From positions 53,258,001 through 53,322,000 of the forward strand of contig OZ260665.1 in assembly GCA_965285935.1 (NCBI GenBank): a stretch of DNA of 64,000 bases. Reading direction: 5' to 3'. The notes under the pieces are model-generated. The model had not been told where the DNA came from. It was given only the letters and a program-made list of their open reading frames with translations, and did no database searches. The translations under genes and the position numbers were made by a program. This DNA is from Ophelia neglecta (lineage: Eukaryota). Shown one piece after another: positions 853 to 21,788 of this stretch. Position 1 is the first letter of the stretch; every line of letters starts with the position of its first letter.

Positions 853-1839
853 ATGCTTGGTCGACATTTAGAAACGGCAAAACAGTCTGTTACCAATACA
901 GTCAAAGGAAAATCCCGGAAAAAGGTCAAAGGGTCATATTTCCGCCTTGGGATTAAAAGACGCCCATTTCAGAATCGCCTTATTACGGTTTGTTTTTTGT
1001 GTTTGTGCTATTCTTTTTACATGCTGTATCTCACTTCTCTTTTTCCTGGGGAAGGAAAACAGGAAAATGATGTGACAAAGAGCCATCCAACTCCTGGGAA
1101 GAGAAGTCGCTCTGCTATCTGGAACAATCCCGTCTTACGACAAGAGGACAGGCGAGTGGTAGTCTTGGTAGTCGACCACGACGCTGACCCCGAACCCTTA
1201 GAGACCCTATTTAAAATTCATTCTCGAGTGTTATTCTTCGAGGAACCAATTCAAATTGTCTCACATATAGCAATGCCTCCATGGACAGGATACGAATCTG
1301 ATCTGCTTACCAGCCTCATGGCTTGTGACAAGAGTGCCTTGCCCCACTTGGTTGACCTTGCTAATCATCAGTTGCTGGACCCTGGAGATTCTCCCTGGTG
1401 TAGCCCGCGTCCCAGACAAATCATCAACAACAAGGACGTAATTTGTAGACCACCATCCAAATTACGATTTGTCAAGCTGTGTCGGTCTAACCATATTGCC
1501 ATTAAAATGAGCAAATTGTCTGACTTGGCTAGATTGATTAACATCAATGAATTTCACAAAGGATGTTGTATGAACGTTGTACACATATCGAGTTCACCAA
1601 ATAGCACTAATAATGTGTTGTTTGCTGTAAGAGATTCCCTTGCTAAAGAAGAAGCAACTCTATACCCCATTGATAATTACAGGAACTATAACCACGAGTG
1701 GTTTGCAACAGGAAACATATTGGGCAAAGTTTTCGAATTATACAATTTCCTAGATTTGTACATAGATAACAGGACTATTGAATGGCTTGCGTCAGTGGGA
1801 GTTACATATAGGATTCCAACCTTTAAAGGTTTCCCGTAA
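853..1839 (+). CDS. Carbohydrate 6-O-sulfotransferase (CHST1/3-7 family)-like type II membrane protein, copy 1; PAPS-binding motifs degenerate
   Basis: 328-aa ORF with a basic N-tail and one TM segment (LITVCFLCLCYSFYMLYL). Family-like blocks in the expected order: LFKIHSRVLFFEEP (cf. LFNQHxDVFYLFEP), DLLTSLMACD (cf. DLLRSLYDCD), LCRSNHIAIK (cf. ACRxxSHVAIK), KVFELYNFLDLYIDNRTIEWL (cf. KTEEIYGFLGIPLDSHVARWI). Clear paralogue at 20769. Confidence 0.85.
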   Translation: MLGRHLETAKQSVTNTVKGKSRKKVKGSYFRLGIKRRPFQNRLITVCFLCLCYSFYMLYLTSLFPGEGKQENDVTKSHPTPGKRSRSAIWNNPVLRQEDRRVVVLVVDHDADPEPLETLFKIHSRVLFFEEPIQIVSHIAMPPWTGYESDLLTSLMACDKSALPHLVDLANHQLLDPGDSPWCSPRPRQIINNKDVICRPPSKLRFVKLCRSNHIAIKMSKLSDLARLININEFHKGCCMNVVHISSSPNSTNNVLFAVRDSLAKEEATLYPIDNYRNYNHEWFATGNILGKVFELYNFLDLYIDNRTIEWLASVGVTYRIPTFKGFP

Positions 1840-3926
1840 TCATTCCAGTCAGCCGAACATCAGATGAACAAAAGCAATTAGCATTGCCTACTGGAAATAC
1901 ATGAGACTCTTGCTGAACTCGTTAGCATTCAAAAGCCAGTTTCATAAGACATGAAAGCTGGTTCAACCGTATGGCTGACCCTTACCAATCTACTGTCGTA
2001 CTGCCCTTTAAAGTATATTTATTTTTGTATTCTACGTGAGTACCTTTAGCACAAGAGAAAGAGTGCTTTGATAAACGATTTATACACCACTCCCGTAAGC
2101 CTTTAGTTTGGTATAACACTACAAATCACACTCATATCTCGTAATCAAGATACATTAATCATTTCGAATACGGAGATGTATATATAATTTGACATATGCA
2201 AACCTAATGATTTTCTCATCTACTAGCTTAACCATGGATTGATATTGTCGCGTGTCCGCTGATGGTATTAGTTCTGACTCCTATGCTAGTCACGCCAAGG
2301 TTAATAAACACTTCAAGCACTAGACCAAACTGCTGATGACAGCACACTAGCACCCTTCCTACCTTACTCTTTTCACGGCTTGTCTCTTTTGCTCATGAGT
2401 TGTCTGCTCTGCCGTTAAGAGTGCTTCTATGTGAGTGAGGGCTTTGAATCTCAATAGAGTCGGTTTTTACCTAGTAACACAGTAAAATTCAACGTTGTTT
2501 TCAATAGCCCCGTGGCTTGCCCATTGGCTAATATTGGAACGAAAATTTAATTGTCGTATACATCACGTCTTGAAACATTGCGATTATTTATTATCGCTAT
2601 TCCATACATATCAGCAGAGTGTCTTCACGAAACGAACACATAATATGTGAAAGCCTGTCTAAAAATTTAAAGTTACAGACAGTCAAAATATATAATACAG
2701 TAAAAAACCAATGTAAAAGAGATTTTACTGTTATTGCCGACTGATGAAGTGTCGAGAGGTCATTCTTATTCTGTTCACCAAGAAGCTTCAACTCAAATGT
2801 AAAATCGATGCCTTTAAACATGCTATCAATGTTCTGATTGCTATAATGTTTGAATAAATACAGTGTATTATGGTGAGTGACCGATGCTTTTTCTTTGCTT
2901 GTCTCGGCTCCTCAATTGAGACTGGTTGATCTCAATACTTACTCTCTAAGTACAAATGAAATGGAATTGTGAGACGTTTCGATTTCATTGGCAGGAGTTG
3001 AAAGGGACTGATATTTAATGAGTGTCTGTTTTAGCTCAATTTGTAACTTTGTTACATTTGCCGTTCAATCAACTAAGAATTTGTACTGCCTACCCGGTAT
3101 TCGTTCCCTTTTCCCCATAAGATAATACCCCATTGCATCTCCAAAGAAAACTAAGAACACATGAACTTTGAATAATGTCTGGGTATTGGTTTGATACCAT
3201 TATGACACCCAGAAGAGAAAAGTCGACATTGAAATTCCCGCTAACAAGTTATAACTTTCATATGCGCAGATGAAGGTGTTATTGCCACAAGATAAATGTG
3301 TTATACAGAGACAAGCAAGCCTTAGCTGATTAAAATATGAGCCCATATGCGTTATTATTAGAGAGATTGGTCAACGAATGATATATCCTTGTATAAAGTG
3401 TTTCTCTTGTTTGGACAAAGGACAAATCTATTTTATTGCCAAACAACTTATAATAGAATAACATTATACTGAATGCAAAATATGTACAGCAATATCAGTA
3501 TGGCTAATATAATATGATAAACACATGTAAGTACAAAATGAACTGCCAAGAATTTTGTGATCGAGTTGCCGGAACAGGTCAAAAGAAGGTCCAATTAACG
3601 GCTATAGGCTACCATTTGAATTATTAGAAAGCGTAGGACAATGAATTATGAAATTTAATTTATCAGTCGGTTAATCTACATTCATTACAATCCTTAAGGG
3701 AAACATATTATTTCTTAACTGGTTTACCTATCAGGACAACCCAGCCCATTCCATCACTGTCGACCACTTAACTATATTCACCCTGACGGTCAGACCTTGA
3801 GCTTGCGGTAAATATCTCATTAAATAGCCATAGATTACCTGTCATTTATTGAGAACCTCTGCAACAAAGGCATGAATAACATGTTTAAACTGAGAGTTAT
3901 ATATCAAAGGCAATATCAGATTTGAA

Positions 3927-5052
3927 TTAAAGGTGTATCGTATCGGATACGATATCTTTGCCCTTTGATAGTTTCTCAATCATAATAAAAAGTTCTGCAA
4001 AATATAGATCAGCAAAAAAAAGCAAATAATCTAGATGACTAAAGTATTTTGATCAAGAGCTTCCAACTGGCTACATTCATGCCAAATTTTACGAAAATCG
4101 GTCAGTAAACAGCTAAGATACGGCAATTTGAACTTTTCAAGGTCATGGCGTGATCTTGATTTTCAAAGTTCATCAACCAGATGAGATTAGTCCCAAGACC
4201 TTCTAACTGGATACATTCAAATTTGATGAAAATTGGTCCATAAATGGCTGAATTACAGGCATTTAAAATTTGCAAGGTCACGGTGTGACCTTGATTTTAG
4301 AAGTAGGTCAACCAGATAATTTTTGGGCTGAAGCCTTCCGAACTGGCTACATTTGTGCCACATTTTACGGGAATCGGTCAATAAACGGCTGAGATATAGC
4401 CATTTAAAATTTTCAATGTCACGGACTTACCTTGATTTTCAAAGTAGGTCAATTAGATAATTTTGATCAGAAGACTTTTTTACTGGCTACATTCGTGCCA
4501 AATTTTGCAGAAATCGGTCAGTAAACGGCTGAGATATAGCCATTTGAAATTTTCAATGTCACAGTTTGACCTTGATTTTAAAAGTAGGTCAATAAGATAA
4601 CTTTGGTCAGAAGACTTTCTAACTGGCTACATCCGTGCCAAATTTTGTGGAAATCGGTCAGTAAACAGCTGATATATAGCCATTTAAAATTTTCAATGTC
4701 ACGGTTTGACCTTGATTTTGAAAGTAGGTCAATTAGATAATTTGGGCCGAAGACTTTTAAACCGGCTACATTCGTGCCAAATTTTTCTGAAATCCGTCAG
4801 TAAACAGCTGAGATATAGCCATTTGAAATTTTCAAGGTTACGGTGTGACCTAAATTTTTGAAGTAGGTCAACCAAAAGTTAAAGGCCTCGAGCCATTGTC
4901 CTTATTTAGGTTCTCACCAAAGATCATCGAAATCGGCCAAGTGATTCTTGAGATATCTTGCAGACAGATGCACAGACACACAGACGGACGGACACACAGA
5001 CGGACATGACAAAAAACATAATCTTTGCCCCCATAGGGGGGCAAAGATAATC
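3927..5052 (-). mobile_element. Non-autonomous Helentron-associated element (HINE / DINE-1 / pearl-like)
   Basis: Read on the - strand: 5' subTIR ATCTTTGCCC with an adjacent inverted copy (hairpin 5021-5048), GTCY/GTGT microsatellite (about 4960-5006), central 140-bp tandem array, 3' subTIR (ATCTTTGCCC on + at 3954-3963) and terminal palindrome TATCGTATC-G-GATACGATA (3936-3954). Confidence 0.8.
4050..4880. repeat. Tandem array of six ~140-bp units inside the HINE
   Basis: Anchor CTGGCTACAT-like motif recurs at 4067, 4207, 4343, 4483, 4623 and 4762; units share GAAATCGGTCAGTAAAC and GACCTTGATTTT.AAAGTAGGTCAA. Confidence 0.92.
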
Positions 5053-5161
5053 ATAGGCCAAAGACTATAAGTGCACCAAATGTCGATTATACGCGAGATT
5101 GGATTGGGTTGGCAAGCCGCCCCAACTTCCTTTTGTTAGAAGCCAATCATCGGTGAAATAT

Positions 5162-5190
5162 CCCCCCCCCTCCTCCCCCCCCCCCCCCCC
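5162..5190. repeat. Poly-C tract (G-quadruplex-capable on - strand)
   Basis: 29-nt almost pure C run. Confidence 0.85.
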
Positions 5191-7144
5191 AACATCCTTG
5201 TAACTTCCGCCATGGATTTCATGCTTTAGCAGGTCGATCAGCAGATATAAAATATTATAAACACATTGTGCAAATATTTTTGAACGAGTGGAAAATGCCC
5301 AACTGGATGCGAGGGATAAATGGAGGGTATACACACAAGAGAACGATTTCTGAAAATTCTTAGTTTCATTTAATACCTCAATTCCCAAACTTAGTTTATG
5401 ATAAAAACACAATTGCCTTTTTATTATTTAACTATAGGATTAATGATACTTTGTCAGTAAATTATTTATCGTATAACATCTGTTAACAGGGTGATGAACA
5501 ACGAATCATCATGGTTAACAAGAAAGTAATTGCTCTAGTTTGTGAATTATTCAAATCACTCACAGCAAGAGCAAAGAGCACAAAGTGTTCAATTAAGATT
5601 CCAAACAGAAGATAGAAGCTTTGAGTTGAAATAAGTTCAGACGTTTCATCATAATCTATCAATGCCACTATTAATGAGGCTAGATAACAAGTACAAATTC
5701 TGAAAAGGATGACTGGCGATAAGATCTTGAAGATGGGGTGCATCCATAGCAGGAACTCGGGATAGGAAAGTAAATGTAAGGAATGAAGGGATAAAGTATT
5801 CAGAGATATGTGAATGATTCGCGGCAAAAACAATGGATTGGTGACTTCAGAAGTAGACGGAAGTAATAAAATAACTTCACGGTAAATTTAATGACTGAAC
5901 CTTGAGATGATCTCAGACAATTAAATTCCCGTAGGTGGGTCTTTTTCTTGACTGTGGTTTGTTCTCTTATATAACCAAAATGCTCATTTCTGAGTTTTTT
6001 TATTACTTATAGTCGCCTGGTAGTCAAGATTTTAACTTAGGCCAGGTTCCAAGGACTATTTTTCCAAAATAAACCACAAACGTCACATTTACGGTACTCA
6101 TTTTTGTTCATGTGTAAACCTGATTATGCTTTCGAATGTATTGCACGACAATATAAAAGGAATCAAATATTGCCAATATTGACATTATTGTAGTAATCTA
6201 AAATTGAATTGCAATCTATGAAAAAATATCTTATTATTCCTCATTCCACAACGAAGAGTATATGAATGGATTGGATTGTAAACGCGGCTAAAATAGATTG
6301 TGCTTATACATATGCATTAATTCTGTTTCTATAAGTACTGTCATAACAAGGGCTAGCGAATTTGCTCAAGTATAGTTCTGTGTTAAAATAAGTATTAATT
6401 ATAACTTTATGAAATGTTAGATTATGAGATGTCAAATTCAACCAAGATTACAATTTCGGCTGCGCTACTTTTATTTGGCTTACAAAACACTGGAACAGTA
6501 ACGTTAAACAGCAGTTAAACCATTCTTATGGAACTTCCGCCCGGTAAACAGACCTGTATATATTTATAGAATCATTAAATTGGGTGGGCTGGGTAAATGC
6601 ACAACTAGGCCTACTATTAATGACACGAAATTAGGTTACACACTATCCCCGAATTCACTCGACCAGGTGACACCAGGAACCCCAGAAATCCCTTGAACAA
6701 CAGTTGGGACCAGGAACAAGTCCCTCTTTAACCACAATTATAATAATGTATCGCAATTGACATACTAATAGTGAAAGTCAGTGAACGATTATCATGTGCT
6801 TAGTATGAGCAGGTTGAGCCATTGTAGCCTGCTTACTCTATAACAGTGGATTTGAAATGTTTCTATTAAGTACATCTGCCTTTTCAATTATCTTCTCTCG
6901 ATTGATATACTTATCTCTAGATACTGATATGTAATTCAATTGTGTAGCCTGGAAAGCAAACACTCTATATGCACATGTGATCTAATTTTTGTTAAATGTC
7001 TTTCCAATTTCATACGCTCATTCATCTGGCCAAATTATATCACCAATTAATAGGTCATAGCCTTTATTCATGACAAAAGTGCGTCTTGAAACTGCATCTA
7101 TGACATTCGGCATAAATATGAATTTTGATGAACAAACCAAAATG

Positions 7145-7323
7145 TAGTGAAACCTGCCTTAAAGACCACCTCTATAATCAGACCACCTGTAAAATTCAGA
7201 CCACTAATATGACGCCCATTCTGTATACTTTCAGTGTTGAATGACCTTTCTAAACAGACCACCTCTGAAATCAGACCAGCATTTTCCAGACCCTTGGGTG
7301 TTCTTAATCCACAGGTTTCACTG
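7145..7323 (+). mobile_element. Tc1/mariner (pogo/Tigger-like) MITE, copy 1
   Basis: TIRs (T)AGTGAAACCTG ... CAGGTTTCACTG followed by TA; internal AGACCAC repeats; homologous over its full length to 49433-49609. Confidence 0.82.
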
Positions 7324-9447
7324 TATGTGGAAATTTAACAATTCCGTACACAGTAGACCTACTAGCTTTTATTATCCGTATATATGATGGACAGTGCAGA
7401 CAAGTTGATAGCAAGTTAAAGTCTAAGTGATGCACAGAAGGCTCCAGTCGGCTGGCTTCCTTAGCCTCTCATACATCCCACACATCAACATGCAAGACCT
7501 TATCGGTTTTTCTTTCCCTATTCGTGAAATGGCAACATGTTTTTTGCTTTTGAAGATTTTGGTAGTCACCCAGCTCCACTGGAAGCTACCAAAGGAATAT
7601 TATTCTGGTTGCATCTCACAAACCATTTGATGTCAACTTTTGCATCATGCAACCTTTAGCTTTTAGTGCATAAGCTTGGATCTGATTTGAGAAACCAGCA
7701 TACCAACATTGGTTTACTTTAAAAAGTCTCACTGTGATGTTCTGTTTAGTTTCTTCAGATGCAGATTTGAATGTATAACTACCATGCAAGACCTCTGCCT
7801 GTGAGAGAGCATATTCTTGTTGACTTTTTTGACATTATGCCTTATATGACATTTCCACTGGTTTTAAGTGCCAATTAAATTTACCAGAGACTAATAACGG
7901 AAGTAAGTTTTATGTATTTAGGAGCGTGTTTGTGACGCATGCCCAAACGGCATTAAGTGGCAATGAATGGATGAGCTAAATCCCGAGTCGGGAGTCTCCA
8001 GACACTTTATGAAAGATTGTCGCCATTATTTCTACCCTATCGGCGAGTTAGACTCCAATGGGACTGTGATATGCTTCCAAAGCTTTTTCGTGACTTAGCA
8101 AGACTTTCTCCCTTAAGGCTGCATGAGCTCCGAAGTGTCTGAAAGTTGTTGTGACACTACGTTATGTCTTGATAGGAAACCACAGGATTAGTCTCCCGCA
8201 GTCCGCTGGATATGACGATAAAACATCGTCAATCAAATACAGTATATTCAGATTTAATGGATATTGGACTGGAGGGAGCAATTAACCACACCCAAGTCGC
8301 TATACCTGTATAATCAACAAAGGGTTAAACAGCAGTCAATTCACGTCAAACGTAATACAACTTCAGAGAGTACGCAATTGAGCTGGTTCTTATTATGTAC
8401 AGTACCATAGAACCCTAGCTAGCAATACTTTTGAGCCCTTTCAGTGATCAATTCACGTTTAAGTTGTATATGATTATTATTGTGTTTTTCTGATATCTAT
8501 GCAGTATATAAGAAATGAACACTAGAATCGTGGCCACTTGCTTATATTTGGATGTTCACTTGCAATGATGGAGAGTACGTCAAACAAACAAAATTTCTTT
8601 TGCGTGCCTTCATGCTCAGTATTGACATTTAAGCCTTCATGCGAGTTGGCGACTTGTCCAGAGTTGAGCCGACATGCTTTCTCTGACGCACAAACAATGG
8701 AGAAAGAACGTGATGCCCACCAGACAGAGACCTCTTCGGTGCCATCAGCCGAGAGACATTGATCTGTACACGTGATTACCGTGACAAAACAATCACTCTT
8801 TTGGTCAGAGACGTCAAACACAACTAAGACAAATTATGTTCTACCCTGACCAAGGCTGGGAAATTGATCTCCCATGAATGCAGCAATTTGATACAAGTAG
8901 TATGGATTTGTGTTTGGCTTAGTTCAGCTTATCCAAATCACTGAATGTTCTTAAACTGTCCCAAATTTTGTCACCTTATATTATCTTGCAAATCAATCTT
9001 AGATCCTCAATTAACACAATGAATAACAACAATATTCACGGTCGACTCAATAAAGACCCGTGTTAACTATATACATTCTAGATTACACAATTCACATTTC
9101 GTCATGAATGTAGACCTACAATTTCTAAAGCAATGTTCCTCAAATTGACTGCCATCTCAGGTAGGCGGCTATATCTGACAGGAAAAAAGAGGCAAATCCT
9201 GACAAGAAAATAAGATAATACACAGCCTAAGCCCTTACGTAAAATTGCTGGAATTATCATTTGATCATAAATTGAGTAAACTGTATTTTTCGACAGTTTC
9301 ATGAAACCCTTTCGCAGCCGACTTCCCATTATCAATGTCAACGTTGATCCACTAGTTCCAAAGCATTTTAGGAGACCTTAATGGACATGACACTATAAAT
9401 GACTTATGAGGCCTGTGCTGACTGCATCTAAGCAATACATAACAAGA

Positions 9448-9541
9448 GGGAGTGGGGGATGGGTGGGGTGTGTGTGAGCAGGTGAGTTGGGGGAGGGGAG
9501 ACGGTTTGAGTGGAATGAGTTGAGTGGGTGGGGTAGGAGGG
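9448..9541 (+). other. G-rich tract with a canonical G-quadruplex motif
   Basis: GGGAGTGGGGGATGGGTGGGG at 9448-9468 fits four G3+ runs with short loops; more G runs follow. Confidence 0.6.
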
Positions 9542-11529
9542 CTACAAGATCACTTTCAAACCTTTTTCTAAAATATTATCAACATCCAATTTTTTACTCA
9601 AAGGTAGTAGCAATAAATTTACAAGGAAAAAATAATAATTTTACATCATAAACAGTTATGATGGTGATTTGTGTCAGGGCTGAAGCCAGGAAAAAATAGC
9701 TTATATATAAGCAGCTGTCCAGTATAAACAATAAATATAACGTGAAAATTTAGTGCGTACATGGTAGGCCTATAGATGTGCTACTGTGTAATGTTTAACC
9801 TTAATTGGATATAGTTGCCGCGATTTCCAGAGAAGAAACTCAGTCTAGATAAATGAATCTGTTAATTGATCGAAAGTCCAAGTTAGGCATTTGTTGAGGT
9901 GTTATGAAACACAAAATATTTTGGACTTTAGCCAGATTTAATTCATCTTTAAATCGGTTCCATGGACTGCGATTAATGTTAATGGGAATTTAAACTGGCA
10001 TTTTCTTCAATCGCAAACACCATAGCACGGATATGAAATAAACCCTATAATCACCCCACTCCCTTATCTAAATCCCCGCATGGAGCGTGTTTGTACCTGG
10101 AAAACAGTTCAAGCGTCTTTTCTTTTTACAAAACGGATGGGCTTTCATTTTAAGTGCCCCACTTTGGGCACAACCAAACACCGGATGTCCGTCTTGTACA
10201 AAGCATTGCGCGTTCTTCTGCCGGCAGTGACGTCAAACAATCCAAGCCGTCTCGAATGCTGTGCCCATTCATGAAATGTCAATATTCCTTGAGCCCCCGG
10301 CGGATGGTGAAGGCACAGAGCCCCGTGATTGAAAGTCACTGGAGGAAATTGGGGACGCACAGAAACAAATGACTTTTTCTATTTTTTAGCACGGAGCGGA
10401 AACGCTTCGGGCTTCAATGAATAAACACTAAATTCTAGTGCAATATATTACAATAATGGCGTTCTACGTAGGCTATTGTAATTCATGTTGTTTCCATTTT
10501 TCAGTCTATCTTGACTTTAACGGTGTGATATCTGAATTTTTAAAGAGACCTCTGGTAAAAGCGCAATAGTTATAAGATTGCCCTATTGTACCTAACTCCT
10601 TTTATATATATAGGCAAACCGATGTCATGTCATCAGTGATAGGCCTATGTGAGGAGAGGCGCTCTTTGCTACAGATTGGTAGGATGAAAATATAATTATT
10701 ATGGGCTTAGTCCTTTATCTAGACTTACGCTCACAGAGCATATGCAAAAGAAAATTAGGGTACTGAAATTTCCACCCAGCATTCTGCCAAGTTGATATTT
10801 GTGTTATTTTTTGTTATGTCTATATTTATATCTTTCGCGTCTACAAGAGCATCTCTCCCTGGTGTTCTCTATCAATGGGGGAACCCTGGTATCTACAAGA
10901 TTCTACATAATTGCATGTCACCGCAACCAAGATTAGAAACTGGTTTGATGAATCTCTGGCACTTGGACAGCTAGAAAAGAATGAGTGTCCATTGATTGCC
11001 CTCATCGCTGAAGGAATTGGAGATGAAACAAGGATTTGTTTACTAAAGAACCAGATATAAGTGGGATCCTGACAGATGAAGAAACTCATAAAAAGCAGTT
11101 GAAATGATATAGATCCCGATATAATTGTTCATTGAAAAGACACATTATGCGTAGATGGGGATAGAATATTCATAGGCAATTGAAAGCTTTTCTGGTGATT
11201 GATCCCATTAAAACATAAGAGATAACGACACCAGATTACTATGATAAAAAGTTCAGTTAGAAACACTATGTCTAGGAATGTCCGCCACTCATAGGCTAAT
11301 CGTTGTGAAACAGAATTGGTCAATTCAAAGTGGTAATTAATTTTTCCTTGTCTAATTACGATTTCCCAAAAAAATGTTTTGATTTAGTCCAATGAGTAAT
11401 TACTTACGGAAGGTTTAAAGGGTCACAGAGGAAAAGTGGAATTAAGAAAGCAAAATTATGACAAGCGTATGACGGAATTGAAGCCTAAGAGTTCCAGGAG
11501 TAATAAGAAATAAAATGTGATATTTCAAT

Positions 11530-11950
11530 ATTTTCCTAAAGACGAAAATACGAGTTTTAACCAACGAATCTCGTCCTTCTAAAAGTCGAAATAAGGATAG
11601 AGAAAAAAACTAGAAATGATCGGGGCAAAAATTAAATAAACTGAAAAATTATTATCGAATTCACGAGGAAAAAACCCGAAATTACGAAAGCGAAAAATCG
11701 ACATTAAGAGAAAGGTCACGAATTTAAGTTTAGGACTCAAAATTAAGTGTTTTAAAATCGAAATAACTAGAAAAATCACAAAATTAGCATAAACGCTACA
11801 TTTTGTCTTTCGCAAACTGAAGATTACGAGTAAAACAAGGAAATTTCCTGGTAGTAACTCGAAATTTCGTTTTTCCAAGAAACGAAATTAAAAGAAAAAA
11901 CCATAAATAACGAGAGAAAGAATGTATATGTTTACGATTAAATTTGAAAA
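11530..11950. repeat. Degenerate A-rich short-period tandem repeat (CGAAAT/ACGAG motifs)
   Basis: Recurrent AAAGTCGAAAT, CGAAATTACGA and AAATCGAAAT variants with strong A skew and locally high CpG. Confidence 0.5.
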
Positions 11951-13400
11951 AAACGTCTTTTGGTAAGTAGGGGGAGCGGGCAAGACAAATTGAAATTCAT
12001 AAATGTCTCGTATTCAAGAGATCACTACCTAGTGGACGTGATGTCAGGATTAGATGCTTGCTTATACCGGAAATTATTGTTGTTAGAATTTTGACATTAA
12101 CGTAAGCGAAAAGTGCAAATTTTGGCTACAGATGAGCAAATAATTATGAAAAATTTGCAATTATTAGCAATTACTTAGAAATAGGAAAGATTTGTGTGAG
12201 AGTTCAGAGTAACTTGGAACTGAATAAAGTGTTTTTAAACCAAGGTTTTCCTAATATGTTAAGCAATATTTGAATAAATAGAATACCCCCGTCCCCCCGA
12301 CCCCTCCCCCTTATACATAAACACTTATAGTACCAGTTTGAAAATCAAAGTTTAACGAAATTTATAGCCTTGTCCCAGCATGGGCCCGTTCCTTGTATTA
12401 ATTATTAATTAATCAGCAAGACATGTACACCCTCCCACAGTGTACGTTGATTTAATTAGGTAGGCTTATTATATAAATCGATAATAATTATAGTCCTAGT
12501 AGACCGTATCGATTAATGATTAAACATTACCAAGTTGCAGTTAAGCTATGCTTTGTTGACTAGACCCCTATGTCTCCTTGTACCATGCTATTCTCTCGAA
12601 TGACAGGTCATGACATCATTGAAGAACACCCAATGTGCTCTTAAGCGAAAACTACTTAACGTGCATTAACTTAAAGTACCACAAGCTGTAAAAGCAGCTG
12701 TAGACTCCCCAGGGTGCGTGAATCGGAAAGCTTCAAGTGGTACATGCTCATCTCAAAGACTTGTTGGCATGACGATCAATGGATATATATACGCAATATA
12801 TAGAACGACGGTTACAGGCTGGGTTACTGAGCAGGTGATGTCAACAAAGGAAATACATTTGATTCAATCTAGGCAAAATATTTTTATTGCCCAAGCAGAA
12901 AAACATGGAATAATAATGAACGAGCAGTCATGCTTTGTTTAATCCTATCTGAATGTACGTCTTTGCGCTACCAAAAAGTACCAAGCAGTATAGAAAAACG
13001 CAGATGGCTCGCAGGTGGTTTTTAAGCCCGCACATTACTTTAAAAACACCATTAACTTTCGGATATTATTGTGCCGAAGATGTCGATTCGCGGTTTATGT
13101 TACAAATTCATACTCTGGCTTATATAAGTGTTCTAATTAAATCATCCATGCGGTTATTAAAACATGGGGTTTAATTCAAGCTGTATTCATTCCTTTTCCA
13201 CGAAACAGGTTTATTAGAAAGAACACATAATATGCCATTATGAAGTTCTCATGAACGATCTGTGTCATAGTGAGACTAATTGGAAAACAAAGCTTCTTTG
13301 TAATGGTGGATAATGTTATTAAACTGATGAGGGGTCGGGGTGCCAGGCGACATCGGAAGCATTTTTCATCGAGCATCTCAAATCGACTATGTTGGAATCG

Positions 13401-13637
13401 GAAGCAGCTCCTTCCATCTTCAGCCCTCTGTAATCAGCTCATTAAATCTGTAGGCGGCGGTTATTAGCTTCTTCCATCTATATGTACCTGTAAGCAGCTC
13501 CTCCCATTTGTAGGCGTCTTTAAGAAGCTCCTTCCATTTGTAGGCGTCTTTAAGCAGCTCCTTCCATTTTTAGGCGTCTTTAAGCAGTTCCTTCCATTTG
13601 TAGGCGTCTGTAAGCAGTTCCTTCCATCTGAAGGCGG
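13401..13637. repeat. 30-bp minisatellite, ~8 units
   Basis: Consensus TAAGCAGCTCCTTCCATTTGTAGGCGTCTT in exact 30-nt register; four near-perfect units at 13491-13610 with more diverged units on the left. Confidence 0.95.
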
Positions 13638-14420
13638 ATACGGGTGACGCTCGACTTTGTGCTCATGCCCATATAACAAATCACACAGGCCATGTCGCAT
13701 GTACATGGGTAAATACAGTGTTTAGGATTTCAACTTTGATTAGCATCATGGTGCATGCTCAGGAGCAATATGTGGATATAACAAAATGGAATATCTTTAG
13801 TTGTTATTTCACCATTGCCCTCACGACGGTATAGGAAGGTTGTAGGTCGTGGCAAATACCCATTGCCAAGCAAAGGTGGTGTCGTTTATGAACAGACCCG
13901 TCATACCAACCAAATGCGTAAAATTCTACTTTAGGACTCAATAGAGGTCGAATAAGCTGGTATGTTTGTCACATGTTTGCATCTGTACTCTGAGAGTTTC
14001 TTGATTCATACTCAGATGGTTACTCAAAGGCCCTTTCCGCCGCCTCTACGTTCTCTATGCTTTCGGCCAGGCCTCCGTGTAAAGCCACGTAATACATTAG
14101 TCGCCATAGTTTGTAGTGTTTTGTGTCCAAAGTTATCTAAGTCATAATCCCATATAAATTGCATCGTGAAAATCCCATTCTTTCAAAAGCCCCTATCCGA
14201 GCTGTGTGCTTATGTCAAAAAAGTCATTAGGTAACATTGTGGTGAATGCCTGTCCACTAGCCGATGTGAAACAAGGATGCAGGACAACAATGTTTTTTTT
14301 TTGTAATCGGATTAATATAACTGATATAAATGATAATCAGACTTTTGATTTAACAATATAGCTCTCATGGCATCGGAATATTGTTAAATCGCCTTATATA
14401 TGTACAAAGTTAGACTGTTC

Positions 14421-14636
14421 GTTCCTGACGATTTCAGTCCGATTTAATGGACTATTCTAGATTAAAGATATTGCTTCGTCTGCCGGGTAGCCACCCCCGT
14501 ATTTTAGCTTTGGGCTAGGGATTAGCTATGTGGACCTGTGACTGGGTTCCTGATGATTTCGGACCGATTAAATTAACTATTCTTGATTAATGACTTTGCT
14601 TTGTCTGCCGGGTATACTTTTAAGTGTTTTTAGCTT
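14421..14636. repeat. Diverged tandem duplication, period 125 bp
   Basis: GTTCCTGA.GATTTC...CCGATT.AAT..ACTATTCT.GATTAA...GTCTGCCGGGTA at 14421 and 14546. Confidence 0.8.
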
Positions 14637-17600
14637 GTGCGTATAGTTAACTTTACCTGATCTACCGGGCATAAGAAAGAACATGCATGGCTTGAACTTA
14701 CATGAGGAAAAGAAAAAAAGCTCAAATGAACCAATTAATATATGTGAATAAGGCAAGATTCCATACAAACTACACGTATATACAAACAATCTAAATATCA
14801 GAAATATGTACGTGTGCGATTTTAGGTGACTGGAAGCTTTCAGGGGGAATCATCGATGGCCATGTTTATATTTCGGTGCACATGCCCATTAGTGAAGAGA
14901 GCTTTCTTCTGTAAATTTCCACCTAATTACCCTGACTCGTGGTATCCTTGGCCAAGACCGACGAAACACGGGAAAATAAAAAAAGTTAATTATTGTATTC
15001 CGACAAGTACCTAGTCCTCTCAGCGCCCTCTGCTTACGAGTAAGCGTATTTATAAAACAAAAGTGTGCCTTACGGAAACAAATGCTTTAAAAATCGGACA
15101 TCTAATACAAAGAGCCAGAAGAATTCTATACACTCCGTGGGACCCTCAGTCCGTCTCAGGACGACATTGCACATAAGATGGCTGTCCAATTGCACACAAA
15201 AAAAGAGGGAGTGTAATTACAAGAACGAAAGTAGTCGTTCACTCAATGACAAAACAAGACGCAAAGAACAAGCAACTGGAGCATTAATCAAGAGTTGACT
15301 GATGTTTGTGCCATTATAACGTATAGGCAAGACAATGTTCCGTCTCCGAGTAGGAGAGTAAACATGCCTTGAAGCTCCTCTAGATTTAGTAATATGAAGA
15401 CCCGGAATAAAGTATTATATATTAACCTTTTAGAATGAAAAAATGTACCTGTCCTCCTGCTCATGGTTTGTCTACATATTATTTTATAACTTTATAACAT
15501 GTTTAATGTTATAAGAAATTGGTTCACACTCTTTGTTACTCACTCCGAATGTCTCGGCACTTGAACACCATAGAGCGGTGACTATCAGCATTGGAATTTA
15601 AAGACAAAACTCGTGGCCATTCAGCTTTGTAACTACCTCGACTAGGCTACATCTCGGCTTCTACTATGTGAAAAGCCAAAAACAGCATGAGTTATTACCA
15701 ATATAACCCAAGAGTATAAGTAGTACCCTTTTGTCGCCTGTTAGTCTAAGTGTATTGCCTTGGTGGGAATCATTATATATAATCAACCGTTTGTCCTCGA
15801 AGGATACCTCTTACAATTGACAGGTTGGTAAACTCTTTCGACCAACAGCAGCTTGACATTTTGCCCACACTGGTCCTAAGTTCAGCATTAATGAAGACCG
15901 TGGGCATGATAGATCAATAGATAGAAGCGGTTATGCAGACAAGCATGAACCAAAACACTCCCACGAACACACCGGCGTCATAAGATGACCCTGAATTGCG
16001 TTTTACGAAGAAAACCTCCTCGCTATAGATTATTCAACATCTTTGAATAGTTTGAGCCTTAAGAGGCATATTAGCATGCTGCAAATATTGAAGAGTGATA
16101 CAACATATTTTGTGCATTAAGAGAAGTGTGGTTTGGGATGTATTATTGACTGGTGACATGTAAGCAGACTGATTGACACACCATAAGAAATAGTTAGCCC
16201 CCATGCAGACGCATCATTGGTACAAAATATTGTTAAACCTTCGTTATTATTCGTTAATTACAATGTTTTGATTTATTTAAATTGTATAGAATGGAAACGT
16301 ATAATTTGGTGTGCAGGTTCCTGCTCAAAGAGGTTTTGAGCCTCACTTGCCCGCGGATTGATTTGCTATATTGTGGCAGATTTCGATTTCGTAGTAGGCA
16401 ATATGTCTTAAGCCGCAAACATGCTAAATATAGTTATTTGTGGATTTAAGCCAGGCATACTGTACCCAATAGGTTGTATATAACCAATATCTTTGTTTTT
16501 TCTGCAGGGTAAGTTGATGAACACTTTGGTATCAAATTTCTTTTACTTTAATCATTATCGTGGAATCATATTTTTCTTCTTCTCAAAATATTTTTTTTTT
16601 CTTAGATCCCAGATTCATATTTCTTTCAACAGAAATCAGTTAGGTTTTTTAGAGATCTGTATGAGCCCCTGTTATCAAATGGTTGCTGCCTAAGACAAAA
16701 TGCTGAAGTCATCTTTTTACCAGTTTCAATCTCTAAGCCTACCTTTTTTGTGTGAACACAAAACTCATAGGCCTAAGAGTAGATGATCTTTCTGCAAGAT
16801 CCAGTTTCGTAAAGCTATTAAGCATAGCTTGCCGGCGGTATTCCCGGCAATCTCACTCTCAAGCGGCAAAACAAGAAATATTAGTACATTTTAAAGTCAA
16901 TTACAATACTTTGATATTGTTGGTCAGAAGACACGTTTGATGTTGGTACGCTAGCTATGCTCTACACATTACAAAAAAACACAAAAGCAGTTTTTTTTCA
17001 CGACAGGCAGAGGCTTTTCACCAGCGGAACAAACACAGCAGCAAGATATTTGAGACCGTAGAGGGTTTATCAGCCAATCGACAATCTAGGAGCTGACTCC
17101 ACGCTGCCTCCGTTGACTGGGAGTGACAACGCCAGTAGAGCTACTTTACACATGGTAAAAATGAATAATCGGAAATAATCGAGCACAAACATCCATAAAA
17201 GATTCAATAATGCCTTGTACTTTGTTTTCACCTTCGTGGCTAGTCTACAACAGCTCAAGATAACAAGTCTTCTGACTATAGAGCACCGGCAAACATGAAC
17301 AAACTCGAAGTGCCCAAGGCAAAACCCACCTCATCATCTAACCGTAACACTGTTATAAAACCTGCAGAAACCATCCCAACGGCGACTGAAACACAGAAAC
17401 ACAATTTACAACAGGCTCGTCTGAGAAACTAATTGGCAGGATGGACAAATGGGTATGTGTATAGTTGATAACTACGTTTATGTGCGTGCCTTCGAGCATG
17501 GGAAAACAACTAAGATTAAAAGGGCATCCAGTTTAGCAGACTCGATGTAGAAATCACTAGTGTAGGCCTTCTACACTAAAATGTGAGATTTTGGGTGTTT

Positions 17601-20599
17601 TTTTGGCGAACATAGGAACAAATATGATTCTGACTAAAAGATATATAACCACACCTCCTCTTCTTGGAATGTTCAAAGAAATATTATTTCTGATAGGCGT
17701 TTTTATTTCTTTGTTAATACTGGCAATTTGGAAAACAGAAAATAAGATAATGCTAAAACAATGACCGCAAAGAAGCCTAATCCCTGGATGGGCGTGTGTA
17801 ATATAACAAGAAAAGACAAATGGATATAAAAATAAAGTCATTATCATCCAAATAGTGTCACTCCGGTGCATTTTATATTCATATTAAGGTCATATCCCAT
17901 GGGCCTGGCAAGTTGTATAAAGACGATAATTTATGGGGAAATCCATTGTCCCGCCGTCAGGGTAATAGGCATATATATCAAATAACAATTCCTTCCTTCA
18001 TTGTGGTATTCGTAAACTGTTTATAAGTGAAATTTGAATAGGCCTGTATTGTGCCAGTATTAAAATGCCAGATGATTGTTCAGCACTTGGCAGTTCGAGT
18101 TACTAATTGAACGTATTCTCCATAAAACACCAAACGCGGGAGTGGATAGCCAGGTAAAACGCTGTATCCACTTTTTATTACGCAACTAACAACGAATTAT
18201 GATCATTTTTAAATGAGAAAAATAAATAAAACAGTTTTACTCCAAATATGTAAATACTATAAAATACGCTGTTCACCTGCCTGACTATGACCAAAACACT
18301 CAGATGACAGGGTGTATCATTTTCATTGCACGCACAAAAATATATTCAGCTTCCTTTCTATTTACATACTGTATTTATTGCACTATTATTGGCTGATGAA
18401 TTGTCTTTGTCTCTCGGTATCCACTCCCAGCCGTTTTTTGGCGGATATTGGAACAAGGGGCAGTGCAAAACAACAAAAATAAATCAATCTACGCTCAGAC
18501 AAATGTGCCTGTTACTATTATATCTCTACATGTTTCAATTGCAAGTATATTATTGAAAGAAGTGAGTGAAGACCCGGCAGACACTGCAATATCATTGCTC
18601 AGGAAATATCAAATAATTTGGCCCGACTTTATCGGGAACCAATTCAGATGCGGGGAACCAGAGTGGGTCGAAGAATATTTTTCCGTTTATGTAAGAGTAG
18701 ATATTCTTAATTCTTAATAAAATATCGATAGTTTTTTCTGTCTGAGTCACATGGACCAGCCGTTCACAGACCTTCTCTTAACCGCAATACACACTCATCT
18801 CAAGCAGACATGATTATCCGTCACAGTGATGACTCGTTTGAGTTTGTAAGATGATCTTCCAATTCGCAATTGCGCATTGAAGACAATTTTTCCTGCGGAG
18901 TACATATATATCCTGTGTTCTCAGGAAGAGGCAAACAATAATTTAACATCACGAAGCTACAGTGTTATACTTAACTTATTCTACATCGCATTGAACACTG
19001 CCAGGACAAAAGAAAAAGACACCTCGATTGTTTAATTTAAATTAATAGACAGAGTTTGTACAAACCTATAAAGTAAGAAGTAGCTACTTAATCGATGAAA
19101 AGGAAAGGCTGCTAAGACAAGCATTTGCTTATTTCTTAATACATCCACTAAAATGAATTTGGACGAACTAGGCTATTGTGAAAGTAGCCGCTGTCAATTG
19201 TGTATAAAACCAGTTTTACCAAGAAATTGCCTGCTGCAACATTGGTAATTGAGTAGCTTCAAGTCTGCATGAGCGCTGACTGCATAGCTCCAGTGTGCTT
19301 GTCCGAAGTAGCGACGCCGCCAGGCTGACGCTAGAGACACGAGCCATTATCAAAAGACACACTGTGACCGTCAGTCATATCGTAGCTCTAACAGCTAGGA
19401 AGGAATAGCACGGCGTTATTTCTTCATTAAGCAAAGTTGGTGTCAACTTTTCATTATATTTGGCGAGGTAAATGTAATACCATTGGAGGGTAGACGCCCG
19501 TCCGGTTGTTGTGCATGAGGACATGAATGTTTTGTGCATCTGTGAATGTTTACTAACAAACTTTCCATTATTGATTGCACACTTATTGTTGGTTATCGAC
19601 CCTAACAAATTCACCAGTAAGGAGGCACACACTCTTGACTCCTGAAGGAAAGCTTTAGCTTATATTTGGATGCCCAAAATATAAGATCATATTGCTGACA
19701 ACTCGGATCCATATGGATATGATTTTAATAAGTAATGATGAATTTAGCAGCACTGCCTCACGGGTACACTCTGGATGGAATAAAATCATCGTTCATTGGC
19801 GTATTACGAGTGATCGGCCCATACACTCATTGCAGAAATTGCAATCTGTCCAGCCAGCTTTATTTTGATTATCTACTGATATGGTGAAATCCATATATGC
19901 TAAGGCACCAAGAACAAGGTAACTCTGTAACTCGACCACGAGTTTGTTCAAGTGAAAAATTATTTCAAATTTCTGGTGAGTTCATATTCTACATATTCTC
20001 AAGACTTCTTTGATACATATTTCGTAAAAGATATTAAATTATTAATCATCAGATATATGAATACAAATTCCTTTAGAATTTCTATCTGATGATTTGTAGT
20101 GATAACATAGACATTTTATTTTCCCGATGGCCAATTTCATCAAACCAGGTTAATTACTTAATTTAAATCAAAGTATGCCAGGACAGTATGTTCCTGATTT
20201 GATTTATGAAAAGAGAAGTGTGAGCAAAATAATGTTTTCATCAACACTATCGAATATTAATAAAGGAGTACAAACGTCGAAGCTTATCACGGCATAGTCG
20301 TATAGGCTCAAACTTTATAGTAGTACACTAGCCTGAAGCGGCTTAGTTACGCAGAGAATATATTGCTCGTTTCGGCCAAACTCTTTCTCGGAGGAATTTT
20401 TTTTCCAAAAAACTAAAGTTTAATTTTCGAAAAGTTACAATCCCATTCGTGGTTGAACGACCAGAAAGTGGGTTTTCCGGGGCACTATAACAAGATGCAG
20501 TAGTTACTTCACTGAAAGGAAGTTCATTTATATTTCACCCCAGCTGTTCCAGTTCGAGCCTTTGAAAATGTATGGTTTCCATTCCGCAATATAAATATA

Positions 20600-20633
20600 T
20601 GTTGTGATTTTGCAACATTTTATGTCGTTGCAG
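20600..20633 (+). promoter_or_regulatory. Probable 3' splice acceptor of the exon carrying CHST-like copy 2 (exon would start at 20634)
   Basis: T-rich tract ending TTTTATGTCGTTGCAG|G, 135 nt upstream of the ATG, similar spacing to copy 1. Confidence 0.5.
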
Positions 20634-20768
20634 GAAATCACGTAGTCTTCATGGTGCGGGAGATTCCTATTTAAACTTGGTCCACCGTATTCTACGTTAA
20701 ACGGCTTACCAGCGTTTAATAATATGGATATCTTATAAGGGAACTTCTTCACCTGACCCGGAGATGAT

Positions 20769-21788
20769 ATGCTTTTGAGGCAACTAAATGTGGTAAAAAG
20801 AGTCAAAGTTAAACCGAAATCCAAACAGAGGACAATAGTGGCTTATTTCCTCTGTGGGTTTATAAGACGTTCATTGCAAACACGTTTGATAACGGTGTGT
20901 TTATTGGGTTTGTGCTTTCCATTTTACATGTTGTATCTTAACCATAATATAACTCATCTGGAAGGAAAACAGGAAGAAAGCGAGATGAGCCAGCCAGCTG
21001 CAACTAAAAATCGCTCTCTTGTCTTCAGTAACAACGTGCTGCGAGGAGAGGACAGGCGGATGGTGGTCTTCCTATTGGACAGTGACGCTAACCCCGAACC
21101 CGTTGAGACCTTATTGAAATCTCATTCCCGGGTCGTTTTCGTCGATGAACCTACTCAACTGGCCTCCAATTTAGCCAATTCTTTCCCAGCCGTAGACAGA
21201 TCCAATCTGCTTACCAGCCTCATGGCTTGTGACAAGAGTGCCTTGCCCCACTTGGTTGACCTTGCTAACGATCAGTTGCTGGACCCTGGAGATTCTCCCT
21301 GGTGTAGCCCGCGTCTAAGACAAATCAACAACAACAAGGATGTATTTTGTAGACCACCATCCAAGCAACGATTTGTCAAGCTGTGTCGGTCTAACCATAT
21401 TGTCGTTAAAATGAGCAATTTCTCTGAATTGGCTAGATTGATTAACACAAACGAATTTCATAAAGAGACTCGCTTCAAAATCGTTCACATTTCGCTGATG
21501 CAGAACAACGTAAGCAATATAATATCGTTACTTGCTGGCGACGCCACAAATGATCCAAAACCAGACCAGTACAGGAACTATTACTGTGATTGGTTTACAT
21601 CAGGAAACACGATGGGCAAAGTTTTGGAATTATACAATTTCTTAGACTTTTATCTCGATAACTGGACTATTGGATGGCTCGCGTCTTTGGGAGTTACATA
21701 TAGGATTCCCAATTATGTGGTTGACGTTCCCCAAACTGTACCAGCACATAGAAACCAGCATTTACATCTGCCCATTGAAAAAACTTGA
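20769..21788 (+). CDS. Carbohydrate 6-O-sulfotransferase (CHST1/3-7 family)-like type II membrane protein, copy 2; PAPS-binding motifs degenerate
   Basis: 339-aa ORF collinear with 853-1839 (roughly 55% identity by eye). TM LITVCLLGLCFPFYMLYL; blocks LLKSHSRVVFVDEP, LLTSLMACD, LCRSNHIVVK, FKIVHI, KVLELYNFLDFYLD; several N-glycosylation sequons (NIT, NRS, NFS, NVS, NWT). Confidence 0.88.
   Translation: MLLRQLNVVKRVKVKPKSKQRTIVAYFLCGFIRRSLQTRLITVCLLGLCFPFYMLYLNHNITHLEGKQEESEMSQPAATKNRSLVFSNNVLRGEDRRMVVFLLDSDANPEPVETLLKSHSRVVFVDEPTQLASNLANSFPAVDRSNLLTSLMACDKSALPHLVDLANDQLLDPGDSPWCSPRLRQINNNKDVFCRPPSKQRFVKLCRSNHIVVKMSNFSELARLINTNEFHKETRFKIVHISLMQNNVSNIISLLAGDATNDPKPDQYRNYYCDWFTSGNTMGKVLELYNFLDFYLDNWTIGWLASLGVTYRIPNYVVDVPQTVPAHRNQHLHLPIEKT

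Follow-up and report, generated by a model that had tools for sequence, protein, structure and literature searches.

Pseudoenzymes are well documented among kinases, phosphatases, proteases and some glycosyltransferases. The canonical gene of a carbohydrate sulfotransferase (CHST) is a single exon encoding a type II anchor and a Cys-rich lumenal domain, and in the active enzymes the region between the two elements that bind the sulfate donor, 3'-phosphoadenosine 5'-phosphosulfate (PAPS), together with an ELFNFLD-type helix, forms the acceptor side. The 6-O-sulfotransferases acting on Gal, GalNAc and GlcNAc (C6OST, the CHST1-7 type) are defined by the Pfam domain PF00685 plus those two elements, a motif for binding the 5'-phosphosulfate (5'-PSB), RxGSSF, and one for binding the 3'-phosphate (3'-PB), RDPRxxxxSR (10.1101/667535). 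A survey of invertebrate C6OST found both PAPS motifs kept in all full-length members (10.1101/667535), and our literature search found no described pseudoenzyme family derived from a carbohydrate sulfotransferase. Here we describe two intronless genes, ORF1 and ORF2, in a 64,000-nucleotide stretch of the Ophelia neglecta genome (GenBank assembly GCA_965285935.1, contig OZ260665.1, positions 53,258,001 to 53,322,000 of the forward strand; hereafter the window). On balance we favor the reading that they belong to a real, selected and probably non-catalytic family with a sulfotransferase fold, whose members act by binding in the secretory pathway.

ORF1 and ORF2 are the only open reading frames (ORFs) of at least 120 amino acids in positions 1-24000 of the window, and the next longest across the whole 64 kb encodes 132 residues. 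Both are open exactly where a preliminary description of this DNA had placed them, and all of the motif strings quoted there lie at the expected places. Their products share 61% identity over 299 aligned residues, and the start codon of ORF1 is backed by the N-terminus ML.R.L, which copy 2 has in common. Searches of the 762 Mb genome with the proteins and with a family profile recovered just these two copies. A wider family emerged when 1.84 billion representative sequences were searched exhaustively with HMMER: the two-sequence profile matched 23 proteins, one at E 1.6e-55 and the rest at 1e-16 to 8e-4; 22 of these relatives and the two window proteins make up the 24-sequence family alignment used below. 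Its members share the motifs DRRxIVL, LLxxHPxV, LFxCxxxxLxxxVDYANxxLLxxxxPWC and CxPxPKxxFxxxCxxHHIAV, a hydrophobic strand and ELFNFLDxY. At a pairwise identity of about 20%, seven residues are invariant (ORF1 numbering: C158, N171, C183, C198, C210, N298 and D301) and three more are nearly so; H123 and E295 also belong to the conserved polar set, and no conserved Asn falls within a glycosylation sequon. The relatives are single-exon genes on eukaryotic contigs, carry N-terminal anchors or signal-peptide-like segments, and are nearly all unnamed. One cluster includes Capitella teleta CAPTEDRAFT_227991 (UniProt R7TR28), entered as a "hypothetical protein" or "uncharacterized protein". The closest relative (L033:9764-10777, on an ENA metagenome-assembly contig) is about 40% identical and has the anchor in the same open frame with no ATG upstream of it; unlike the window genes, it probably starts on another exon further upstream. 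In ENA assembly ERZ26052449 two very different members occur, P0003 and P0008, both sharing about 22% identity with ORF1 and each present on two contigs (L034/L035 and L036/L037). Because both occur in one assembly, other genomes carry several ancient family paralogues, whereas this genome has only one recently interacting pair.

The family lacks the elements by which C6OST enzymes hold PAPS. For comparison we used a canonical set of CHST-type genes from the same genome aligned with annelid homologues, multi-exon CHSTs being represented by single-exon references only; the first two sets of sulfotransferase loci collected from this genome were HS3ST-like or of other classes and not CHST-type. 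At the 5'-PSB position, hhalign comparisons with TPST-like and HS3ST-like profiles independently placed the essential Arg (PRSGTT) or Lys (RKCGT) of the loop on Asp110 of ORF1. These alignments are short and local, but they set strand, loop and helix in the same register and agree with the secondary structure predicted by AlphaFold2 (AF2). Family-wide, this loop is of variable sequence and acidic in character (K+R 7%, D+E 20%, G 3%), and neither RxGSSF after beta1 nor any [RK][ST]G[ST][ST]-type loop occurs in a family member, in contrast to RGGSSL or RSGSSF in the canonical genes of this genome and of annelids. At the 3'-PB position, RDPR...S is absent from all 24 members and invariant in 20 of 20 canonical CHSTs; global hhalign pairs NVVHISSSPNSTNNV of copy 1 with IIHYVRDPRAIA. 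The canonical RYEDL is replaced by YNHEW in copy 1 and YYCDW in copy 2. From the 3'-PB to the YEDL position the family spans about 34 residues, versus about 60 in canonical CHSTs of the same genome (about 25 missing), and the canonical C-terminal region f.T.R.N....WR......C..VL..LGY, of about 45-50 residues, has no counterpart.

Loss of both PAPS motifs, replacement of RYEDL, shortening of the intervening segment and absence of the C-terminal region had all been proposed in the preliminary description, and each withstood comparison with the canonical enzymes. The proposal that the loss predates the local duplication gained strength, since some 23 distant relatives in other genomes share the losses, which are therefore far older. 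All three donor-binding elements, the 5'-PSB P-loop, the 3'-PB motif and the C-terminal region, are thus gone, and family proteins are most likely unable to bind PAPS or transfer sulfate. A donor site that is dismantled and unconstrained argues for a non-catalytic binding protein. On the sequence evidence the family would qualify as a pseudoenzyme, with the fold kept, the cofactor residues missing and purifying selection at work.

Enzymatic function might nonetheless survive, either through PAPS bound by unconventional residues or through a scaffold re-tooled for another chemistry or donor; we regard this as unlikely. Conservation of seven invariant and three near-invariant residues, polar ones included, at about 20% identity is typical of a functional site, and the sulfotransferase fold does host non-transferase chemistry, as in retinol dehydratase, which is among the structural matches described below. 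Candidate residues could be His (H123 and the HH before beta3), E295, N298, D301 and N171. However, no conserved basic residue or Gly/Ser/Thr-rich loop follows beta1, the 3'-PB motif and the entire C-terminal donor-binding region are absent, and by the usual geometry of the fold the conserved DRR before beta1 and HH before beta3 would lie on the sheet's other edge, away from the nucleotide site. We therefore retain the reading of a binding protein that is probably non-catalytic.

ORF1 and ORF2 are paralogous genes under purifying selection and are most probably functional. Between the copies dN/dS (omega) is 0.46 (bootstrap 95% interval 0.35-0.62) and reached 1 in 0 of 500 replicates; in the stem it is 0.76. 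For a frame evolving neutrally, the probability of remaining open would be about 0.001 or less once 0.2-0.3 substitutions per site have accumulated. The two loci resemble each other in nucleotide sequence (75% over 911 nt) only within 923-1817 and 20829-21709, intervals that start and stop inside the ORFs, and the flanks cannot be aligned. Selection, which had been part of the original claim, is thus well founded for this pair; dN/dS against the closest relative (P0001) was unusable because dS is saturated. An origin as a transposable element was rejected, as only two genome copies exist and their flanks are dissimilar.

The divergence of the copies is uneven. A central 270-nt tract is 91% identical, versus 65% elsewhere, with dS of 0.17 inside and 0.6 to more than 1 outside. 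At fourfold-degenerate sites of identical codons, 1 of 29 differs inside the tract and 22 of 45 outside (Fisher p = 2e-5), and the longest identical run, 64 nt, ends at ORF1 codon 171. The statement that the copies had diverged substantially thus holds outside the tract and fails within it. Since silent sites outside are near saturation, the duplication is old, and the near-absence of silent changes inside indicates later gene conversion, which homogenized the most conserved core: the tract holds the strongest motifs of the family, in copy 1 LMAC...LVDLAN..LL....PWC and C.PPSK..F..C..NHIA. The pair neatly exemplifies an old duplication followed by a conversion tract over the functional core. 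At least seven ORF1 variants were listed from other haplotypes of the one sequenced sample, comprising 2 synonymous and 4 missense changes and 1 in-frame 3-nt insertion, with no stop or frameshift among them. One of these polymorphisms, H172D (window 1366, codon 172), gives ORF1 the residue that ORF2 and P0001 carry. The insertion, AAG behind 1645 (codon 265), adds a Glu in a variable region after the former 3'-PB strand.

In both proteins the order of tail, anchor and domain suggests a Golgi protein of type II. In ORF1 the Kyte-Doolittle average over 19 residues peaks at 1.93 at residue 43, and AF2 predicts a helix at 38-63, with a mean predicted local distance difference test (pLDDT) of 92-93 across residues 41-60. 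The domain C-terminal of the anchor carries N-glycosylation sequons and conserved cysteines in both proteins. By the positive-inside rule, a basic tail directs type II orientation; the basic tails therefore point to a cytosolic N-terminus and a predicted lumenal domain. The proposed type II anchor and the topology expected of C6OST are accordingly present in both copies as predictions from the tails, the hydrophobic segments and the AF2 helix.

The predicted lumenal domain has a sulfotransferase fold. With the 24-sequence alignment AF2 reached a pLDDT of 77.6 and a predicted template-modeling score of 0.67, with 145 residues above 90; a two-sequence alignment gave a useless model (pLDDT 32). 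The ORF1 model contains strands at 101-107, 126-129, 214-219, 239-246 and 276-280, a loop at 108-113 after the first, and helices at 114-122, 147-174, 203-211, 249-264 and 289-314, an order that matches the five-stranded parallel sheet and N-terminal strand-loop-helix of sulfotransferases. Its best nine Foldseek matches in the Protein Data Bank (PDB) were TPST1/2 (probability 0.99-1.0, E 3e-4 to 1e-3), with further sulfotransferases and P-loop kinases ranking next, and no CHST1-7 structure was among the PDB structural matches. In the ESM Atlas the best match was a "carbohydrate sulfotransferase 1" cluster (template-modeling score 0.50, 219 aligned residues). Sulfotransferases ranked first in all four structure searches (Foldseek, VIA re-ranking, VIA exhaustive search and ESM Atlas), as the fold proposed earlier for these proteins would lead one to expect. 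Among protein language-model neighbors of ORF1, 28 of the 30 nearest were CHST4/5-like clusters.

A more specific link to CHSTs is suggestive. The genome has at least 99 PF00685 matches, and canonical CHST-type genes recovered from it, one of which has annelid proteins as its nearest named relatives, include a complete single-exon gene (L043:566-1768) with RGGSSL, RDPRAIAKS and KYEDL. Domain-only profiles of the family and of CHSTs aligned by hhalign at a local E of 0.011, and aligning them globally gave a match that is weak but keeps colinear order across 212 columns. It pairs LMAC..L/LFNC..L, C..NHIAIK/C...I.A.KviR, NVVHIS/IIHYVRDPR, NHEWF/YEDL and ELYNFLD/vY.FLG; of 60 column-shuffled nulls, 1 reached the observed score (empirical p of about 0.03). 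Among six sulfotransferase classes of the same genome only the CHST class aligned globally and colinearly. When the family profile was run against the sulfotransferase ORFs of the genome, CHST-like ORFs came first, with insignificant scores and decoys interleaved. The "CHST-like blocks in order" of the preliminary description are therefore upheld by the fold, the language-model features and a weak colinear global alignment, and are not significant by hidden Markov model (HMM) or profile comparison.

Several results weigh against the reading we favor. In Pfam neither ORF has a match at E<=10, and the Pfam sulfotransferase models match 0 of the 24 family members, so the HMMER comparison with Sulfotransfer_1 and Sulfotransfer_3 that had been suggested as a check came out negative, as did the PF00685 by which C6OST are recognized. 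Genome scans with PF00685 and PF13469 placed none within the window among the matches listed, a word-based homologue search with ORF1 was blank, and sequence searches of the PDB with the single sequence and with the family profile returned nothing. Comparison of the full-length family with CHST profiles gave a hhalign E of 0.086, the margin of sulfotransferases over generic folds in the structure searches is small, and a language-model search with the distant member P0008 produced no usable match. An omega of 0.46 is fairly relaxed. No run recorded as RNA carries the locus; the three runs that do are genomic DNA of a single sample, in which read depth stays even across intergenic DNA, and no poly(A) or other sign of a transcript is present on Logan contigs bearing relatives. 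Complex prediction for the ORF1 lumenal domain with CHST L043, run without alignments, scored 0.00, which is no evidence either way. Finally, loss of activity is deduced from sequence, and the geometry of the PAPS cleft from secondary structure and alignments.

Under a further alternative, the proteins would not derive from sulfotransferases at all but would carry an independent lumenal alpha/beta domain, P-loop-kinase- or Rossmann-like, whose resemblance to CHSTs is generic. The insignificant profile scores and narrow structural margin just given are of the kind such a domain would produce, but we consider it improbable: sulfotransferases lead every shape search, nearly all language-model neighbors are CHSTs, three sulfotransferase classes align beta1-loop-alpha1-HPxV in the same register, CHST alone gives an end-to-end alignment with the five blocks in sequence, and a type II anchor with a Cys-rich lumenal domain in one exon is canonical CHST gene architecture. 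That the ORFs are pseudogenes, decaying or only lately dead, or are open by chance and without function, is effectively refuted: the absence of the locus from runs recorded as RNA, the fairly high omega (also in the stem) and the missense nature of 4 of the 6 single-nucleotide polymorphisms seen in ORF1 would suit this view, but two ORFs of about 330 codons stand in 38% GC DNA where all others are at most 132 amino acids, both frames are intact although silent sites outside the tract are near saturation, omega is significantly below 1, the flanks no longer show any resemblance although the ORFs are 75% identical, the polymorphic indel keeps the frame, and intact relatives exist in several other genomes.

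Coordinates of the two genes and their features in the window
Feature	Position	Strand	Basis or remark
Gene copy 1 (ORF1)	853..1839	+	intronless ORF, 328 aa, stop included
Copy 1 predicted cytosolic tail, residues 1-42	853..978	+	13 K+R, 1 D+E
Copy 1 predicted signal-anchor / transmembrane helix, residues 43-64	979..1044	+	hydropathy; AF2 helix
Copy 1 beta1 strand RVVVLVV and former 5'-PSB loop DHDADPEP (residues 108-115)	1153..1197	+	AF2; hhalign
Copy 1 gene-conversion tract, residues 147-236	1291..1560	+	dS; fourfold sites
Copy 1 strand and helix start at the former 3'-PB position, now NVVHISSSPNSTNNV (including VVHISSSPNS)	1573..1617	+	AF2 strand 239-246, helix 249-264
Copy 1 YRNYNHEWF (canonical KYEDL position) and ELYNFLDLY helix (canonical vY.FLG)	1678..1761	+	alignments
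Gene copy 2 (ORF2)	20769..21788	+	intronless ORF, 339 aa, stop included
Copy 2 predicted signal-anchor helix, residues 40-57	20886..20939	+	after tail with 11 K+R, 0 D+E
Copy 2 beta1 strand RMVVFLL and former 5'-PSB loop DSDANPEP (residues 104-111)	21057..21101	+	family alignment
Copy 2 gene-conversion tract	21195..21464	+	dS; fourfold sites
Copy 2 former 3'-PB position, now KIVHISLMQNNVSNI (including IVHISLMQNN)	21477..21521	+	family alignment
Copy 2 YRNYYCDWF and ELYNFLDFY	21570..21653	+	sequence

The rest of the window is AT-rich eukaryotic DNA (about 37-38% GC). Its remaining ORFs of at least 100 amino acids have no Pfam match, and an Rfam scan of the window gave no match. Two repeat arrays were observed, a 140-bp tandem repeat between the two genes at 4061-4871 (5.8 copies, 81% matches) and a 30-bp array at 13402-13636 (7.8 copies). 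Elsewhere in the genome, intronless Sulfotransfer_1 genes are very greatly expanded (for example at C7:95.84-96.01 Mb, C7:92.65-92.77 Mb, C8:85.31-85.41 Mb and C5:19.25-19.30 Mb), many of the matches lying in tandem clusters whose SULT-like ORFs are about 250 amino acids long, and dozens of CHST-type genes carry the 5'-PSB and RDPR/YEDL on different exons.

A mechanism can be proposed for the family as a set of binding proteins. The lumenal domain would keep the alpha/beta core of a PAPS-dependent sulfotransferase, most like the Gal/GalNAc/GlcNAc-6-O type, and the four invariant cysteines would stabilize it, probably as two disulfides. Conservation is strongest between the former PAPS motifs, in helices and Cys loops, and in ELFNFLD.Y, where E295, N298 and D301 of the copy 1 helix region are conserved family-wide. 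This concentration on the acceptor side favors an acceptor-site "reader": a Golgi or secreted protein that would recognize either a glycan, in the manner of a lectin, or an active sulfotransferase or its substrate, and would thereby modulate sulfation. The preliminary description had suggested a lectin, a scaffold or a regulator of active sulfotransferases as candidate roles. More tentatively, we propose the first CHST-derived pseudoenzyme family, ancient and at least annelid in extent, in which the acceptor side was turned into a binding module regulating glycan sulfation. By analogy with FAM20A, its members may serve as allosteric partners or competitors of active CHSTs; alternatively, they may read sulfated or unsulfated glycans. 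If the proteins do regulate or read glycan sulfation, they would add a new layer of control to a pathway that has undergone great expansion in this genome. Because no Pfam model covers the family and sulfotransferase HMMs do not see it, standard pipelines label its members "hypothetical"; the family alignment is a ready seed for a new model.

Comparison with described proteins delimits the family. CAPTEDRAFT_227991 of Capitella is a true member with the same anchor and motifs as the window proteins. It is about 22% identical to them and matches the family profile at a hhalign E of 2e-34, a profile that already holds a near-identical fragment; it is without annotation, and we found no mention of it in the literature. 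TPST1/2 (PDB 3AP1, 5WRJ and 8W5Z), the nearest structures, are 8-10% identical, and their PSB loop PRSGTT and PAP contacts are not kept here. With C6OST (CHST1-7 and the expanded invertebrate CHST-like proteins, PF00685/PF13469) the family shares a single exon, an N-terminal signal anchor, a Cys-rich alpha/beta domain predicted to be lumenal and, in the weak global alignment, the same order of blocks (beta1, LF.C....L, C...(I)A.K, a beta4 of hydrophobic residues, an aromatic-acidic strand and a ..Y.FL. helix). Unlike C6OST, it has no PF00685/PF13469 match, RxGSSF, RDPRxxxxSR or KYEDL, is short of about 80 residues of Cys-rich insert, and has motifs of its own (VDYAN..LL....PWC, HHIAV and ELFNFLD.Y). 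In principle the closest analogy is FAM20A, a secretory-pathway pseudokinase that activates FAM20C (PMC4421793, PMC5413348): it is a Golgi or secretory paralogue of an active transferase that has lost catalysis, has its own disulfides, is maintained by selection and acts by binding its active relative. FAM20A differs in fold and chemistry. It retains nucleotide binding, though in an inverted mode; in the family described here the donor site appears dismantled.

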